Assembly (NCBI GenBank): GCA_004431415.1
Contig: QPMI01000457.1
Coordinates: forward strand, 62,001 to 126,000
DNA length: 64,000 nucleotides
Reading direction: 5' to 3'
Source: Cyanophora paradoxa CCMP329
Lineage: Eukaryota > Plantae > Glaucophyta
The translations under genes and the position numbers were made by a program. Below the pieces are notes generated by a model, which was not told the DNA's origin, did not search any database, and saw only the letters and a list, made by a program, of their open reading frames with translations. This document shows, piece after piece, positions 15,601 through 28,228 of this stretch (position 1 is the stretch's first letter; every line of letters starts with the position of its first letter).

Positions 15601-16393
15601 CGTCGCCGGGCTCGTGCTCGAGGCGGTGGCGGCGGTGGACGCCGAGGTCATCCAGATCGTGGGGCGCGACGCCGCCGCCCCGCCCGGCCAGCGGCCCCCG
15701 GAGGCCCCGCCCCGCGTCTACGCCGCGGCGCGCCCGGCGCGGGGCGGGGCCCCCGCGGCCTTCTCGCGGCGGGAGATCGACCGGCTCTTCGCCCAGAAGC
15801 TGCGCCTCTTCGCGGCGCCAGCCTTCCAGCACAAGGCCATCCTCACCGCCATCATCCGCGTCGCCCTCAAGGCCCGCCCGCTCCGGATCCCCGCCCGCCC
15901 GCCCCACTCCGCTCGCCCGCTCGCTGGCTGAGAGCGCGCGCGGGGGAGCGCAGGGCCTGATCGAGTGTGTGCGGCTGCGGACGGTGAGCAAGGCCGGCTT
16001 CCAGCAGATGCAGCTGGACACGCACTTCCTCCGCATCATGCTCCGCCCCTACGTCAACGAGGAGACGTGCGCCGCGAGCTCCGCCATCCCTGCCAGGCTG
16101 ACAGGGCGGGCGGCAGGGTGCTCGAGACGCTGGCGGACGAGGTCATCACGAGCGCCGCCGACCGCTGCCCCGAGCCCGTGCCCCTCGAGCAGGCCGTGCG
16201 CCAGACCGGCCCTCCTCCCCGAGCCAGCAACTCAGGCCCCTCCCCCGCGCAGTTCGTGGACCAGGTCTGCGAGGCGAAGCGGGCGCTCCTCGGCGGGAGC
16301 GCCGCCGCGCCGGCGGCCGGCGGCCCGCAGGGGGCCTCCCCCGCGGCGGGGCCCCTCGCCTCCCCGCCCCACTCCCCCGACGACCTCACCTGA
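12672..16393 (+). CDS. VPS51: Vacuolar protein sorting 51 (GARP/EARP complex subunit)
   Basis: Signature [38 protein letters not shown]...[15 protein letters not shown], and C-terminal [34 protein letters not shown]; many short introns; stop at 16393. Confidence 0.95.
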
Positions 16394-16898
16394 GGCGCCG
16401 CGCCGCGCTTCCCACTGTGCACCCAATTCGAAAGCCATAGCGCCTCATGTTAGCGCTGGTTGCGCGCGCGGGGCGTGAGCTTGAGGACGCTTGCGGGCGA
16501 GGGGCAGGCCTGCGCCAAGTGACGCGCCGCGCGCCGCCGGCACTCCTGGGCCTAGGCTTCATGATCAGGCTGCAAACTCTTGACCGACAGTACTAGTGAG
16601 TCCCGGCCTGGGTCAATTACCACGTGCACGGCGGTTACTGCAGCTGCGAACGCAGCGCCGGCGCGTGCGCAGCTGTACCCTATCTAGGCCTCGCTCAGGC
16701 TCGCTGGCAAGGTCTGGCATATGCATTGGCCGCCTGGCCGGCAGTTAAGAGCCTCGTTCCGAAGTTCGCACCCGGGCGCAGCCAGCGGTATGCCCTAACC
16801 TGCAGCTGTGCCTGGCCCACGATTCTCTAGATCTGCGCATGCCAGGCTGACATGCACCTTGCTGCGCACGCAGTTCGAATTCCTGCGATCATCGGATT

Positions 16899-18333: not shown

Positions 18334-18816
18334 CCGCCGTCGCCTGCCTCGGCCTAATCCCGCCCGGCGGCTCCCTGCAGGCCCCGCCCGCTCCGCCAGC
18401 TGCAGACCCCAGCCGCGGCCGGCCTCGCGCTCGCGATCGCCTCGCCCCTGAGCGGCCCCTCCCCGCGGTCCGCGGCTCGTGATCGGGATTCGGGATCCGT
18501 CAACGCCGCGACCGGCCGCCGACCGGCGGCGCCGGCGCCGCCGGCCGATCGCGATCGCGACTCGCGAGCTCGAGCCGGCGCCTACGTTCAGAGAAAAAAG
18601 AGACTCCCATGAGTAAAAAAGCAATAGTTGGGCCCTGCGTAGCCTGCGTAGCCGAACGTAGGGCTGCGCCGGCCCTTCTAGCTACTTGCTTCTCTTGCTG
18701 CTTCTCGCATATTGCGTATGGGAGCCACCTGCAGTTGCTTAAGCTCATCGATATCGCATTCTCGAGTACGCATACGTAGCGCTAGCGTGTCCACGGCAAC
18801 GACGGCCGCAGCTACC

Positions 18817-21157
18817 ATGGCCACCACGAAGACGCCGACGCCCACGCCGACGCGCGTGATCAACGCATTCGCCGCCTACGAGGCGGGCGCGCCCGTCAAG
18901 CCGGTGCGCATGCGCTCGTCCCGCGCGCGCGCGCCCTCGCCCGCCGCCCCGGCCTAGGCCTCGGGCCCCGATGTCTCTTGAGCTCTGATCGCGATTTGGA
19001 TCCATACTCGTCATGACATGCAAGCGCAGTACCAGTACGAGGCGAAGCCGCTCGGGCCTCTCGACGTCGAAGTCAAAATTCGGTTTTGTGAGTCTGGTTT
19101 GAATTCGAATGTCGCGATCGGAGAATGTGTATTTGCAGCTGAATTCGAGCAGGCGGCATCTGCCAGAGCGACATCGGCCTGCTTCAGGGCAAGTTTGGTC
19201 CCTAGTGCGTACGCCTTAAGCCACGTATACCTCAAATCGTATCATTGAATATCATGACACCGGTCCCCGCGCCCCTGGCCGCCCGCGCAGCTCGGTGTAT
19301 CCGCAGGTCTGCGGCCATGAGGTGAGTGATGTCGATATATATGTCTTAACAGCTGCAGCAGCTGCCCTAGTGCTCGAGATGGCTCGGGTGCGGCTCGAGC
19401 GCCGATCGGAATCGCGCACAGATTGTGGGCGAGATCACCGCCGTCGGCTCCGCCGTCCCTCACCTCAAGATCGGCGAGACGGTTCGAATTCGCGCTCTGC
19501 ATCTTACAAGCTTAAGCGAAGTCTCGTTTCGAACGCTGACGCGGGTCCGGCTCCGGCCGCGGGCGCTCGCTCGCGCAGGTCGGCGTCGGGGCGCAGCGGT
19601 CATCGTGCATGGGCTGCAAGTCGTGCTCCAGCGGCGAGAACCAGCACTGCCCCCAGCAAACGAGCACCTGCTTCGGCGGGGAGAAGGGCGGCTTTGCCGG
19701 TAATCTGCTCCATCGATCCGCCTTCGCCTGATTTCATTATTGATTTCGCGTCCCTTTCAATCAAAATCTAGATTACATCCGGGTCCCGTCGTTCTTCGCC
19801 TTCCCCATCCCGAAGGTTCGAATGAAATTCGCGCTGCGTCGCGGCGCATGCACGTGCAATACTGTCTGGCCGCTGGAATTGAATTCGTAACCGTCGTTCA
19901 TGATCAGGAGATCAAGCCGGAGCACGCGGGGCCTCTCCTCTGCGGGGGCGCCACTGGTGCGCGCGCGCGCCCCCCGAATCCGAAGGATCCTCGCGACCCA
20001 GGCCATGTGGTCACGCGCATGCGCCCCGCGGCGCCGGCAGTGTACTCGCCGATCTCGGAGCACTGCGCGCCGGGGATGAAGGTCGCCGTCGTCGGCATCG
20101 GCGGCCTCGGCCGTGCGTGCCCGCTCGCGCGCGGCCCTCGCAACCCTCGCCTTGCATTTGCCGCCCCCGGGCAGGCCCTGGCCTGGCCCGGACCGACCCT
20201 CGGGACCGCAGACCTCGCCGTTCTGTTCGCCGTCGCGCGCGGCTGCGAGGTGCCTAGTCCTCCACGCCACGCGCCGCCCCGCCCCAGTCCGACCCGGCCG
20301 GACCCGGGGCAGACGTGGGCGATCTCGACGTCGAAGGAGAAGCGGGCGGAGGCCCTCGCGATGGGCGCCAGGGGCTTCATCAACAGCAGGGACCCCGACC
20401 AGCTCAAGGCGCCCCCGGCCCCCGGCCCGCTGAAGGCCGCCGCCCCGGCCGGCGCCCTCTGACTTGAGCTTGTCTCGCGCGCAGGCGCAGGCGGACCAGT
20501 TCGACGTGGTGCTCGTGACGGTCTCTGCGGCCCTCGACTGGCAGCCGTACCTCGCCCTCCTCGCCCGCCGCGGTCCACGCCCGCCCGGCCCGGCCCGCCG
20601 CTACAGGTGCGATATATCGATGCCTAAACGAAAGTCAACTCCGCAGGCAAGCTGGTGTTCGTGAGCGCGATCCCGGGCGACATCACGGTGAACATCCTCA
20701 TGCAGCTCGTCATGAAACAGACCAGCGTCCACGGCAGGTGCGCGCCCGCCCGCGGCTGCCCCGCTTTCTCGGCAATTTTCGTGCCCACGCTCGCTTGCAA
20801 TTGGCTGCCCATATTCGTTACGGCCTAAATTTAACCGTGCAGCTGGATTTCGGGGCGGCGCGGCATGCAGGAGATGCTGCACGTGCGCTCTGTTTCGAAA
20901 TTAATTCTTGATCTCTCATTAACCGTGCCGCACTGCGGCGCGCGTGCGCAGTTTGCGGCCGTGCACAGGATTCAGCCCCTCGTCGAGCTCTACCCTTTCG
21001 ACAAGGTGTGCTGCTCCCGCGCGCTATGATCTGGCCATGGCCAGCCCGCGCCCCGCCCCGGGCAGACATCGACGCCGCCATGCAATCGCAGATCAACGAG
21101 GCGCTGCAGCGCGTCGTCGACAACAAGGCGCGCTACCGCGTCGTCCTCCGCCACTAA
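18817..21157 (+). CDS. Zn-dependent, probably NADP-dependent alcohol dehydrogenase/aldehyde reductase (CAD/Ahr-YjgB-like MDR), ~15 introns
   Basis: CGICQSD, GHE, structural Zn motif CMGCKSC...C, GPLLCGGATVY, GIGGLGHLA, LDWQPY and C-terminal KARYRVVL*. Confidence 0.93.
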
Positions 21158-21361
21158 ATATATATATAGCCCCGTGGCTGCTCTGTATATATCCTGCCAA
21201 CTTGAGGAATCCGATGATTGTATTCGAGTGCGCACATGCACCGCGGCCGTGGCACCTGCAGCTAGCGCTGACAGCAATTTCTTTGAGATACCCGATCGTC
21301 AGTTGCAGGGTGCGGGCCGGGGCCGGCCACGGCAGGGCACAGAATTCCGAATATGTTTGGG

Positions 21362-21392
<31 letters not shown>

Positions 21393-21429
21393 GGGAGGGG
21401 GAGGGGGGGGGGGGAGCAGGCCCTACTAA

Positions 21430-21825
21430 GCCAGCAACTTAGGCCCTTCGAAATTCCCCCGCGCAGTTCGTGGACCAGGTCTGCGAGGCGAAGCGGGCGC
21501 TCCTCGGCGGGAGCGCCGCCGCGCCTGCCGCCGCCGGCGGCCCGCAGGCCTAGGGGGCTTCCGAAGTTCCCCCGCGGCGGGGCCCCTCGCCTCCCCGCCC
21601 GGCCCCACTCCCCCGACGACCTCACCTGAGGCTCCGGGCGCCGCGCCGCGCTTCGAGCTCATTTAAAGAGTCATTTTATATTAATATTAATATTAATTCG
21701 AGCTCGCGATCGTGCTGGTGGCGCGCCGCGGCGCGCAAGGCTTGATCGACGTCGACCTCGAGGCCTAGGGGCGCTAGCGCTTGCGGGCGAGGTGCACGTG
21801 CGGGCCTGCGCCGAGTGACGCGCCG
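21430..21825 (+). pseudogene. Decayed duplicate of the VPS51 last intron end, last exon and 3' flank
   Basis: Matches 16223-16530 (TTCGTGGACCAGGTCTGCGAGGCGAAGCGGGCGCTCCTCGG...CCCGACGACCTCACCTGAGG) with insertions, including an introduced TAG. Confidence 0.9.
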
Positions 21826-22249
21826 AGGGTCGGCCGGATCCCCGTTATGCACCTTCAGGTGCACGTGCGCGGGAATTCGAGGGTGTGGGGGGGGGGGCAG
21901 CCGGGGGTACGCAGCGTTGAAGAAGAGCGCAAAACTTGAAAAGCTTGCGCATGCAATTGTTCGCCACCTCTCGCATTTGCCGCATTTGCTGCGTGCAAGT
22001 CGGGCTCGGTCTGAGCATCTCACGAAGCGCACGACGGAACGTCTAGACGGCGCGCAGGGTAGAGAACGAGTGTCCGGGGCGAGAACCAGAACCAGGTGCG
22101 GCGCTTGCGAGCCTGATTGTACCAGTATCTAACCGCATACGCACGCGCGCAGCAGCGGCGCAGCAGCAGCAGTCTTCAAGCGCGTGCTTTAAATTTCTAG
22201 CTCCTCGTGTGCCGGCCGCGCCCGCGCCCGCGCCCGTGCCGCTCGCCCG

Positions 22250-25200
22250 ATGGATCCAGTGGCCATCCTTCGCGGCATCGTTCAGGTGCCTCGACCGGCC
22301 GCCGCGCGAAGCCGCGCCGCCGCTGAGCGCGGGCCCCATGATCAGGTCGCCCTCACGATCCGCGACGTGGCCCAGACAGTCAAGCTCAACAAGGCCAAAT
22401 GCCAGCGGCTGGCTCGACGCGTGCAAGACCTGATTCCAACCCTCGAAGGTGCGCGCGCGCCGCGCGCATATGCATGCCGCGATTGCATTTGCAAGCGGAG
22501 CGCGGGGCGCATGCGCAGCGCTGTCGAGCTCGCCGCGGGCGTGCAGCGAGCAGGCGCGCGGGGCGGCGGAGTCGCTGCTGTGCGCGGTGCAGGAGGCGGA
22601 GGCGCTCGTGCGCAAGTCGAGCGCGCGGGGCGGCTCGGCGCTGCAGCGGGCGGCGGCGCTGGTGACGCTCTGGGCGGACGCGGAGGCCTTCGACGAGGTC
22701 CACGTCGGAATGGACCGCGCCCTCTCTACTCTCACCGCCGTCCTCCAGGCGCCCGCCCGCCCGCCTCTGGAGTCTATAAAGGCGCCTTCCGCGCCCCGCC
22801 CCGCGCGCGCTGACGTCGCTCAGGTGCGGCTGGAGGAGCGGGCAGCGACGGCGGAGGAGCGGGCGGCGGACGCGGCGGAGGACGCGCGGGCGCTGCAGGA
22901 GGCCCTGGCCGAGGCCGGCGACGCGCGGGCCCGGCGGGACGCCGGCGCTGCCGAGCCCCGCGTCGTCAAGGAGCGGGAGGTCAAGGTGCCCCCTCCCCGC
23001 CCGCCCGCGCCCCCGCGCCCCGCCCCGCCTCGCTGAGGCCCCTGGAAGGTCCGCTGGGCTGAGCGGCTGGGCGTGGCGGGGAGCGGCGTCTTCCGCGGCG
23101 AGTGGCTCGGCCTCCCCGTCGCCGTCAAGCTGGCCCGCCCCGCCCCCGCCCGCCCGCCCTCCTGAAGGCTGTGCTGAGCGGCGGGGCCGTGCAGGTGCCG
23201 TCGGGCGGAGCGAGCGGGGCCGGGCGGAGGCGGAGCGGCAGGCGGCGCTGCACGGGGCGGCGCGGCACGCGCACGTCGTCGGGCTCCTGGGGGCCTGCGT
23301 GCGCCCCGCCGGCCGCTCCGCCGCCGACGGGGGCCCGAGGGCGAGGCCCTCCTCCTCGTCATGGAGCTCCTCGAGGGTCCGCCGCCCCCGCCCGCCCGCC
23401 CCGCGCGCTCTGCCTGGGCCCTTGTATTGACCGGGGCACGGGCCAGGCGGGACGCTGGCGGAGGCGGCGCGGGCCGGGCGGCGCGGCGGGCGGCGCCGGA
23501 GGAGCGGGCGGCGCAGCTGCTGCCCGTTGCGAGGGCCCTGCACCACCTCTCGAGCCTGCCCGACCCCATCGTCCACGGCGCGCCCGGCCCGGCACCGGCC
23601 CTGACTCCGGCGGCGCCGCCCTGACGCTAGTCCGGTGCAGGGGACGTGCGACCGGCGAACGTGCTGCTGACGGCGGGGGGCGTCCCCAAGCTCGCCAACT
23701 TCCGCGCCGCCCGCCGCGCCTCGGGGGCGCGCGCCGGGGCCGCCCCCCGGCCCCCCGACTCGCCCACCTACGCCCCGCCCGTGCGCTCGGTCCCTCGCCC
23801 CGCCCCGTTCCGGCCAGAGCCCGAGCGGGCGGGCGCGGGCAGGAGCTGTGGGTGGCGGGGGCCGGCCCCAGCGAGGCGGGAGATGTCTACTCCTTCGGCT
23901 GCACCCTCTACGCGCGCCCGCCCCGCCCGCCCCGCCCCCCCGCGCCCTTAGCTGACGGTCCTGGGCAGGAGGCGGTGGCGGGGCGGGCGCCGTGGGAGGG
24001 CACGGGGCGCGAGGAGGCCTTCCGGCGGGCGCACGGGGTCGGGGAGCGGCCGCCGATGGACGGGACGTGGCCGGGCCCGCTCCGCAGCCTCCTCGCGAGC
24101 TGCTGGCAGGCCGACCCCGCCCGCCGCCCCGACTTCGGCCTCGTCGTCCAGGCGCGCGCCCTAGCTCCCAAGGCGCTGCCTTCGCCTGCCCGGCGCACTC
24201 CTCACCACGCCGTCGCAGACGCTGGAGTCCCTGGCGGGCCTGGGGCCCGCCCCCGAGCTGGGGCGGCCCTTCCGCCCCGAGCTGCCGGCGCCGCCGCTGG
24301 TGGTGGACCCCAGCGGCCCGCCCCGCTGCCTCCGCAGCATCGCTGAGGCGCTCCGGCGGGCCGCCCCGGGCCAGGACATCCACATCCGCCCCGGCCTGTG
24401 CGCCCCCGCTCTTCCCTGTTCGCTTCGGCGCCGGCGTGTGAGCGGGGGCCGCCAGGTACGACGAGGGGGCGCCGCTGGTGCTGGACCGCGACGTGCGCCT
24501 CATCGCCTCCCCCGGGGCCGTCCTCGAGTGCCGCGCCGGCCCCGCCCTGCACTGCCGCGGGCCGGCGGCGCCCTACGTCTCGGGCCTTGCGGTGCGGGGC
24601 CGGGGCGCGCGGCACGTGGCCGTCTTCGTCTCGGAGGGCAGCCGCGCCCGCCTGGATGGGGTCGAGGTCACCTCCGAGGGCCTCGCCTGCATCGAGGCCC
24701 GCCCCCCGCCGCCGCTCTCTCGGCGCCGCCCTTACGATTCGCGTCAGGTGCGGGACCCCGGGACGCGGCCGCAGCTGCGGGGGTGCGGGGTGCGGGACGG
24801 CCCGCGGGCCGGAGTGCTGGTGCGCCTCGGGGCCGAGGCGCTCCTGGAGGCCTGCGACGTCCGCGGCTGCGCCCGCGCCGGCGTCGAGGTCTGCGGGGCG
24901 CGCCCCACGCTCCGCGCCTGCCGCATCTCCGGCGGCGCCGGCGCCGGCGTCTTCGTGCACTGCGCCGGCGGGGGCCTCGTCGAGGGCTGCACCATCGAGG
25001 GCAACCGCAAGGCCGGGGTGGAGGTCGCCGGCGAGGGCGCCTGCCCGACCCTCCGCGGCAACGCCGTGCGTGGCTGCGGCGGGCCCGGCATCGCCTTCCT
25101 CGGCGGGGCGAGCGGCGCGGCCGAGGAGAACGCGGTGGCCGGCTGCGGCGGGGCCGGCTTCGAGGTGGACGCCTCGGCGCGCCCGCTCCTCCGCGGCAAC

Positions 25201-25828
25201 ACCCTCGACGGGCGCGAGTTCGGGCCCCGCCGCGACCCCTCGAGCTCCTCCTCCCCCTCCCCGCAGCTGAGCGGGGGCGGGCACCGACGGCCCCAGCTCC
25301 CCTGCGCCGGGCGCCCCCGGTCCGCCTCCCTCCCGACCCTCGCCGTCCACATCCCGGACGCCGCCGCCTCCGAGGCCGCCCCGGGCCCCGGCCGCCCTCC
25401 TCGCCGCCCCAGCCGCCCCCGGACCGCCCCGCCCGCCCGCCACCAGGACCCGCCCCGCCTCCGCTGGGAAGAATGCCGAGCCGCCTCGCTCCCACCCGGC
25501 GGCCCCGCAGGCGCTGGTGCGCGCCCCTCGTCAGCACGACCGGCCCCGCCCGCCCGCCCACGCCGCCCTCGCGCAGGGGCGCGGGCGGGCGCAGTCGGCG
25601 GCGGACCTGCGCATCGGGCGGCCGGCCTCTCCCGAGCCTGAGTGCGAGCCCGGTGAGGCCGCGGCGCGCCCCAAGGGTGCCCCGCCCCCCGCCCATCCCA
25701 GTCTAGCCCGCCCCGGCCTCTCCACTCTAAGCCTCGCTCGGGCAGGTGCGCTGCGGCGGCGGGCCTCGGCGGTCTCGACGGCCGTGCGCGTGCTCGAGGC
25801 GATCGCCGCCAAGGGCGCCAGCAGCTGA
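22250..25828 (+). CDS. MLKL-like protein: N-terminal four-helix bundle + TKL-type pseudokinase + right-handed beta-helix (PbH1/CASH) domain
   Basis: Exons 22250-22285, 22346-22448, 22519-22748 and 22824-22985 give MDPVAILRGIVQVALTIRDVAQTVKLNKAKCQRLARRVQDLIPTLE...VQEAEALVRKSSAR...AFDEVHVGMDRALSTLTAVLQV. Kinase motifs: VAVK, HAHVVGLLGAC, HGDVRPANVLL, KLANFR, YAPPE, DVYSFG, CWQADPARRP. Beta-helix: SIAEAL...IHIRPGLY followed by GVxVxxxxxxxLxxCxI repeats. Two or three 1-bp frameshifts at 23195-23480; 3' end uncertain (25641 or 25828). Confidence 0.85.
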
Positions 25829-26287: not shown

Positions 26288-28228
26288 TCAGGCCGCGAAT
26301 TCGAGCGAGGCGAGGGAGGCGGCCCCGGCGGCGAGGAGGAGGGCGAGGGCGGCGGCGAGGGGCCCGCCGGGGCGGCCCGGGCCGCCCGAGGCGCGCGGGG
26401 CGGCGAGGGCTGCCAGGCGCGCCTCCTCCTGCGCCAGCCGCCCGCACTCGGCGGGAGGGCGGCCCCCGTACCCCGGCGACGAGATCAGCGGCCCCTGGCA
26501 GAACTGCTCGAGGGGGTACCCCGCCTTGACCTCGTGGCACTGCGCGTTGCCCCAGCACCTGCGCGCGCGCCGGTGAGTCTCTTCTCGACGGGGAAGGATC
26601 GGGCGGGGGGTACGGGGGCACCAGGCGCATCCGCGGCTGGCGGCGCACTCGGCGCAGGAGCTCCGCGAGGGGCACGCGACCCGCGGGCAGTCCCCCTTCT
26701 GCTCCGAACATCAGAGCAAACCAAGATTTAAGTTTAATGGAAGGGAGGGGGCACCACGAGGGCGGTGCGGTTGCAGGGTACGGAGAAGCGGCCGGAGACG
26801 GGCTCCACCTCCACACACGCGTTCGCGTCCCCGCACCTGAGGGGGGGGGGAGTCAGGGGCGGGGGGGCGAAGGGTGGGACGGGTGGGACGGGTGTAGCGG
26901 CCGGCGCGCCAGCCGCAGGTGCGCTGGGCGGTGCAGGCGTCGCAGGAGGGGAACGCCGCGCAGGGCGGGGGCGCGGCGGCCGCCCGGGCCCCCGCCGGCC
27001 CCCCCGCCGCCCCGCACTGCCCGCCCCAGTACGACCACCTGCGCGCGTAAGACAAAGAGGGGGGAGGAACCGGGGTGGGGGTAGGGCGGACTTGGTGCAG
27101 GGCATGGGGGCGGCGCCGGTGAGCGGGGCGGCGGAGGAGCCCTGCCCGATGAGCGAGGAGGCGGGGGAGCCGCCCCCGGAGCCGAAGGCCGGCAGCACGC
27201 TCCGCACGCAGCCCTGCCAGTGCCGGGGGAGGGGGGGTACAGCGTCGGAGTGCCGGGTACACGTTTTGAGCAGAGAAAGGAATCGGGGGGGGGGGGGGGG
27301 GGGGAGGACCTGGACGTCGTCGCACCAGCCGCAGCCGGCGCGGAAGGTGCACTCGGCGCAGGTCGCGTACCCCAGGCAGGAGCCGCCCTGCGTCAGCCAG
27401 CACTGCTCGGGGCGCGCGACGAAGCGGCCCCCAGCCGACCCCTCCGACCCTGCGCGCGCGTCTCTCGGGTCTTGGAGGGGAGCGGGTAGGGTAAGTGAAA
27501 TGGTGCCGGCGCGCCGTCGGCGGCGCCGCAGGGGATCATCGGCTTGTCCCCGGTGGCCCGGAGGCACTGGCCGGCCCGCTGTCTTCAGCCGCCGGCGGGC
27601 AGCGGGGAGGGCGGAGGAGGCCCGCGGCGGACCTTGCTCCGGGCCAGGCACCAGCCGCAGCCGAACTCGGACGCGCACTGCTCGCAGGCCCCCAAGTTGT
27701 CGCACTGGTTTCGCGTCAGCGCTAGCGCTGGCGGGGAGAGCCGCGCTGGCGGGGCGCCGCGCGGCCGGACCTTGGACGGGCAGTAGCCGGCGTTAGTTAC
27801 AGAGCAGCCGGAGGAAGCGCACCGAGCTCCGTTCGAGCACCAGCCGCACTTCAATGGCGAGCCGACGCACTCGTCGCAGCCCTTGATGAAAGAGCACGGG
27901 TCCGCTGCGAGCAGGAGCGTAAGCGACGTAATCGGACGATTCAACGCGACGTGAAGCTCAAGCGCGCGGGGAGGCGTGGGCGGTGGCGGAGGTGGAGGTG
28001 GTGCCGCCTGCAAACGCCGTCGTTCAGGTCAGGTACCAGTTCAAATTGCTGATGAAACCGATTTCTCACCGCGGCGGGCTGATCGAGGCTCGCGGCGGGC
28101 CGATCGGAATTTGCGGTCGAGCTTTGCGGTTGCGCCCAGGCTCCGCCGGTCAGCCCAAGCACGCAAACCGCAATCGCGAGAGTGCGCAGCTGAGCGCAAG
28201 GCACGCGGGAGTCGCGGCGGGCCGGCAT
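26288..28228 (-). CDS. Secreted/GPI-type PSI (plexin-semaphorin-integrin) repeat protein
   Basis: Signal peptide LAIAVCVLGLTGGAWA; four CxxxxxCxxC...CGWC repeats (e.g. CSFIKGCDECVGSPLKCGWC, CDNLGACEQCASEFGCGWC); hydrophobic tail PLAAALALLLAAGAASLASLEFAA*. Confidence 0.8.

Follow-up and report, generated by a model that had tools for sequence, protein, structure and literature searches.

The window analysed here, a stretch of 64,000 nt of Cyanophora paradoxa DNA, carries on its + strand a gene that, in our reading of the sequence, extends from an ATG at 22250 to a stop at 25828 (22250-25828) and comprises about 16 exons. The gene contains 14 clear introns of 51-75 nt each, 6 of the 14 being of the GC-AG type, plus one probable short intron, and it encodes a predicted protein of ~850-900 residues in which an MLKL-type four-helix head is followed by a brace, a pseudokinase, a beta-helix and a disordered low-complexity tail. 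A previous sequence-only reading had placed the gene at 22250-24230; its start holds, whereas the gene runs on well past the end proposed there. In the public annotation this one gene is represented by two models, tig00020723_g13448.t1 (P0001) and g13449.t1 (P0003); P0001 is a spliced model of 215 aa and is 99% identical to the exon 3 query. Exons were translated and searched singly, and P0001 and P0003 were searched as public models. The splicing of exons 6b-7, 7-8 and 9-10 in P0003 was rejected, as these exons are mis-spliced in the model and the HGD motif is lost. GC donors are located at 22749, 23133, 23578, 23912, 24152 and 24697, three of which are confirmed by spliced contigs, and several GC-donor introns were missed by the public models. 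The elements of the gene are as follows (X1, X2 and X5 are sequencing runs):

22250..22285, + strand: exon 1, ATG and first half of helix 1; the start of P0001 matches, and a GT-AG intron comes next
22346..22448, + strand: exon 2, end of helix 1, basic loop and helix 2; its 34 aa alone match Pfam MLKL_N (E 7.3e-5)
22519..22748, + strand: exon 3, helices 3 and 4 of the four-helix domain; P0001 residues 48-123
22824..22985, + strand: exon 4, helical brace, aligning to MLKL brace helix 1; 144/162 bases in a spliced contig
23049..23132, + strand: exon 5, eroded Gly-loop and VAVK; spliced contig X1 record 1
23195..23298, + strand: exon 6a, alphaC (probably Gln at the Glu position) and beta4; one-base frame offset relative to exon 5
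23299..23339, + strand: probable short intron of 41 nt, or of 47 nt ending at 23345; accounts for frame jump 2
23340..23376, + strand: exon 6b, beta5 and hinge, from translation
23447..23577, + strand: exon 7, alphaD, alphaE and start of the catalytic loop; frame jump 3 near 23465-23497
23641..23780, + strand: exon 8, catalytic Asp and Asn, NFR for DFG, activation loop
23843..23911, + strand: exon 9, APE Glu and alphaF
23969..24151, + strand: exon 10, kinase C-lobe to alphaI; spliced contig X1 record 2; TAK1 alignment
24219..24397, + strand: exon 11, Pro-rich linker and beta-helix cap; contigs X1 record 2 and X2 record 9
24456..24696, + strand: exon 12, first beta-helix coils; contigs X2 records 9 and 10
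24748..25516, + strand: exon 13, beta-helix to about 25200, then low-complexity tail with a frame change or intron somewhere between 25336 and 25450; contigs to 25335
25577..25676, + strand: exon 14, low-complexity tail; X5 record 18
25746..25828, + strand: last exon, short helix and stop; X5 record 18 and X1 record 6; end of P0003

Directly upstream (18816-21158, + strand) lies a multi-exon gene that by eye reads like a cinnamyl/YahK-type zinc alcohol dehydrogenase, and tail to tail with the MLKL-like gene (26300-27900, - strand) is a gene with repeated Cys-rich units (CGWC type, PSI-like). The segments 21429-21830 and 16222-16530 are partial copies of one another (about 82% identity); the copy at 21429 carries several short insertions, and a GT repeat and a long G run lie upstream of it (21360-21416). 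No paralogue of the MLKL-like gene was detected within the 64,000 nt, the remaining matches being low-complexity.

Parts of the gene stretch are present in eight sequencing runs, and six introns (22986-23048, 23578-23640, 24152-24218, 24398-24455, 24697-24747 and 25677-25745) are skipped in contigs of X1, X2 and X5, three RNA-like runs from two studies. The contigs cover 1757 of the 2692 modelled exon bases, as against 12 of 887 intron bases; since exons are covered and introns nearly not, these runs behave as RNA, the run type being our guess. Contig depth is low (3-5), and about 1,750 exonic bases match the transcript contigs without a mismatch. Moreover, brace and kinase are linked within the contigs, as are kinase exon 10, exon 11 and the beta-helix beyond. 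The six introns seen spliced all lie from exon 4 onward and none in the four-helix part, among the contigs listed, none of which covers exons 1-3, 6 or 9. The DNA of the head is confirmed, since a contig of run X7 spans 21900-22770, unspliced, with zero mismatch to the window.

The window sequence contains three frame jumps in the kinase N-lobe/hinge region, which the sequence-only reading did not mention. At the first, exon 5 ends in phase 0, but exon 6 is in the kinase frame only from two bases past the acceptor, giving a one-base offset; this acceptor alone fits the place where contig X1 record 1 ends, and other exon 6 acceptors were rejected because they do not. The second jump is probably, judging by its sequence, an ordinary short intron: with a matrix derived from the gene's own donors, the donor at 23299 ranks first of 534 exonic GT/GC sites and outscores each of the true donors in the leave-one-out comparison, and the phase is restored with an acceptor at either 23339 or 23345. 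At the third, the frame changes between 23465 and 23497, where an intron would not fit. X5 record 15, which spans 23457-23576, is 11 letters shorter than the window sequence there, and this length equals the offset of the jump. Of the three jumps, only jump 3 lies within a transcript contig among those listed, and that contig does not have it. Two offsets (jumps 1 and 3) are left that splicing does not account for. The assembly was produced from PacBio RSII reads and Illumina-corrected, with zero-coverage areas left as PacBio (PMC6704402), and the G+C content of the region is 80-85%. The offsets in the reference would be assembly errors or a strain allele, the former being the likelier cause; an inverted-triplication origin was looked for and not found.

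These offsets also bear on whether the gene is intact. We consider it quite unlikely that it is a decaying paralogue, in which the offsets would be real in the strain and the losses of kinase motifs would reflect relaxed selection and not a pseudokinase role. Such decay would fit the two offsets without a splicing explanation, an 11-base difference that exceeds the usual long-read error, the short insertions gained by the nearby duplicate, and the shallow contigs. However, the same 11 bases are missing from the transcript contig, the exonic bases cited above correspond to transcripts with zero mismatch, no stop occurs in the head, brace, C-lobe or beta-helix, and the splice signals are intact.

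The MLKL-like four-helix head proposed earlier was upheld by profile and sequence searches, and the quoted peptides and motifs were found where they had been placed. P0001 passes the Pfam MLKL_N profile (PF22215) with 49.1 bits against a cutoff of 27, over positions 3-135 of 142, and its only significant PDB matches are to MLKL N-terminal constructs (E 1.5e-4). Weaker matches were obtained with DUF7792, PUB10_N, RPW8 and MCAfunc, while DUF1221, the HeLo head type of seed-plant MLKL, gave no match to P0001 in Pfam up to E 1. The alignment of P0001 with human MLKL spans residues 7-148 and includes brace helix 1; the segment between head and kinase, which had been described as a helical brace, aligns to this helix and is helical in the AlphaFold model. 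In the Atlas, the head falls next to plant clusters of MCAfunc, MLKL_N and RPW8 (0.87-0.91). Two single-sequence AlphaFold runs (no alignment) returned four to five helices in a generic bundle, with pLDDT of about 72; Foldseek placed MLKL at rank 1-2 for these models, though not significantly and superposing badly (E 0.17-0.28, TM 0.28-0.45, rmsd 12-16), and VIA-align and Atlas fold searches with them returned generic bundles, MLKL not being in the VIA top 50. The membership of the head in MLKL_N rests on sequence. P0002, an FN3 repeat match of wrong composition, was rejected.

Helix 1 of the head is amphipathic (moment 0.43) and is followed by the basic residues K25, K28, K30, R33, R36 and R37. 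Residues 1-124 carry a net charge of only +2 and contain no transmembrane-grade segment (max KD19 1.29). The latter features would suit a head that is a non-lytic adaptor or an autoinhibitory or oligomerisation module, the protein being a signalling scaffold of the same architecture, a possibility that we regard as unlikely. Plant MCA/PLAC8 and U-box/ARM proteins are also headed by MLKL_N-like domains, and in wheat Pm13 neither the 4HB nor the 4HB plus brace kills alone (PMC11297308), both of which favour a scaffold. On the other hand, the MLKL-like brace and the dead kinase fit the layout of an executioner, and Pm13 signals via an active kinase, which is probably missing in the Cyanophora protein.

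The degenerate TKL-type kinase read behind the brace was borne out by profile and sequence searches, including the individual motifs. The C-lobe passes the Pfam profile PK_Tyr_Ser-Thr with 33.3 bits (partial model). In place of DFG the protein has NFR (23697-23705), aligned to the DFG of TAK1 and NEK7, the codons being taken from the assembly only. The alphaC Glu is probably Gln (23239-23241), with the register given by a weak STK16 alignment (E 1.1), and the Gly-loop (23067-23090) is eroded, having lost the register of the second glycine and one residue. VAVK is kept at 23118-23129, as is HGD, which is split by intron 23578-23640 and whose junction is present in a transcript contig. The beta3 Lys, catalytic Asp and Asn, APE Glu, alphaF Asp and C-lobe Arg are all kept, and an Arg sits two residues after the catalytic Asp. 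Further deviations from the kinase consensus occur at the Gly of DFG, at APE and at the end of the activation loop; these, with the low Pfam score of a partial model (33 bits), would again suit a decaying paralogue, against which stands the fact that the losses fall at the ATP/Mg motifs and the fold residues remain. A Ser is located close to the position of human MLKL T357, a single residue that may be due to chance.

A pseudokinase is defined by sequence as a kinase without the beta3 Lys, the HRD Asp or the DFG Asp (PMC4718504). Since the DFG Asp is Asn, by a codon known from the assembly only, the Cyanophora kinase is a pseudokinase under this definition and, as far as its sequence indicates, is probably inactive. 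It seems very unlikely that the kinase retains low or cation-independent activity and signals itself like wheat MLKL-K. The kept beta3 Lys, catalytic Asp and Asn, and the Arg two residues after the Asp would speak for such activity. CASK is a case of atypical kinase activity. JAK2 JH2 is likewise atypically active (PMC4718504). However, the DFG Asp, the DFG Gly, the alphaC Glu and the second glycine of the Gly-loop are all changed, and Asp184 is listed as needed for catalysis (PMC4718504).

In PDB sequence searches the kinase is nearer to NEK7, RIPK3 and TAK1 than to MLKL, which does not occur among the 47 matches to the catalytic core, nor among the best 60 of the 132 to the C-lobe. Thus, the label 'necroptosis-type' given to the protein stands for the layout, which is analogous, and not for orthology, because these searches give the kinase no specific tie to the MLKL pseudokinase. 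PADLOC and NCBIfam gave generic kinase and beta-helix matches only.

The right-handed beta-helix behind the kinase matches Pfam Beta_helix (PF13229) with 65-67 bits against a cutoff of 25.9 (E 2.5e-18). Its nearest listed relatives are bacterial (P0004, P0005 and P0007-P0010; 29-38% identical), with 33% identity to P0004 over the whole domain and 29% to P0005, and its sole PDB match is a weak one to a fucoidan lyase. These bacterial proteins share the beta-helix and combine it with caspase or AAA domains but, unlike the Cyanophora protein, lack a four-helix head and a kinase. P0005 (L001 475-2496) is a caspase plus beta-helix protein, with the caspase as its head; P0004 (L002 116-2564) has an unannotated helical N-terminal domain and lies 7 bases downstream of a PP2C phosphatase gene. 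Searches with the head, beta-helix and kinase, run within length limits and up to 8000 candidates, gave no orthologue among the matches listed, which comprise only the two public half-models and distant bacterial proteins, and metagenome and viral scans found no relatives.

MLKL homologues are known in animals, fungi and plants (PMC11476962, PMC9950082). One survey, which covered 67 protists and used only homology to human sequences, reported that it found none of the regulators of necroptosis (PMC7539657). In the literature, with few subscription papers covered, we found no glaucophyte MLKL-type case and no beta-helix fusion. Vertebrate MLKL shares with the Cyanophora protein the MLKL_N head, the brace and a pseudokinase with the beta3 Lys kept and the DFG Asp lost. 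In contrast to human MLKL with its HGK (PMC4718504), the Cyanophora kinase keeps the HRD Asp; moreover, vertebrate MLKL ends after the pseudokinase, whereas the Cyanophora protein continues into the beta-helix and tail, and vertebrate MLKL has RIPK3 as a partner, while none is known for the Cyanophora protein. Seed-plant AtMLKL1-3 share the four-helix head, brace, pseudokinase and a low-complexity C-terminal tail (10.1101/681015), but seed-plant MLKL heads are of the DUF1221 type (PMC11297308), which the Cyanophora head is not, and no beta-helix has been described for them. Poaceae MLKL-K (Pm13) is likewise an MLKL_NTD-kinase by independent fusion; its kinase, however, is active and needed for death, unlike one with NFR, an alphaC Gln and an altered Gly-loop. 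Because MLKL_NTD-kinase fusions arose at least three times within grasses (PMC11297308), the simplest reading of the sequence is that both the head-kinase fusion and the catalytic loss occurred independently of animal and seed-plant MLKL. The all-in-one NLRs of fungi (HeLo/HELL) and plants (RPW8) similarly combine an N-terminal 4HB-type effector, a switch and C-terminal repeats; their switch is a STAND NTPase instead of a pseudokinase, and their repeats are LRR, WD40, TPR or ANK instead of a beta-helix. The Cyanophora protein is best read as an MLKL analogue that was put together independently and has a candidate sensor built in, and not as an MLKL orthologue.

Our leading, tentative reading, to which we give slightly less than an even chance, is that this is a functional gene for an all-in-one defence/stress receptor with an MLKL-type head gated by a pseudokinase. 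By analogy with MLKL and AtMLKL (10.1101/681015), the brace and pseudokinase would hold the head shut until it is freed, either by a ligand that binds the beta-helix or by another kinase that phosphorylates the activation loop. The beta-helix is suggested as the trigger because its position, a repeat behind a switch, resembles that in HeLo/RPW8-headed all-in-one NLRs (PMC12881547). The freed amphipathic helix 1 and the basic patch might then engage anionic lipid, and oligomers could disturb the membrane, leading to ion flux and possibly to cell death. The receptor reading is favoured by a bacterial protein in which a related beta-helix is joined to a caspase head; against it stand the non-killing 4HB of Pm13 and the immunity of AtMLKL, which is separable from death (10.1101/681015). 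A more far-reaching proposal, which we find rather doubtful, is that of a self-contained algal immune receptor, in which the beta-helix of bacterial affinity would sense a molecule from a pathogen or from damage, and the gate of an MLKL-type lytic head would be a pseudokinase in place of an NTPase; the protein would then belong to a family with exchangeable heads and represent a further independent origin of the MLKL layout.

Our collective results indicate a real gene, a variant of the MLKL layout with an extra beta-helix, whose lytic function is a candidate one and whose reference copy is imperfect. With such a head-brace-pseudokinase protein, the MLKL layout and its catalytic loss would recur by convergence and would not need multicellularity, the host being a unicellular member of an early-branching archaeplastid lineage, the glaucophytes. 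The attached beta-helix would offer a direct route to ask for the trigger without RIPK3, and the question would arise of a genetically encoded lytic defence in a unicellular alga. At the opposite end of the protein from the head, the last exon (25746-25828) codes, besides a basic Ser motif, for a short helix that looks amphipathic.
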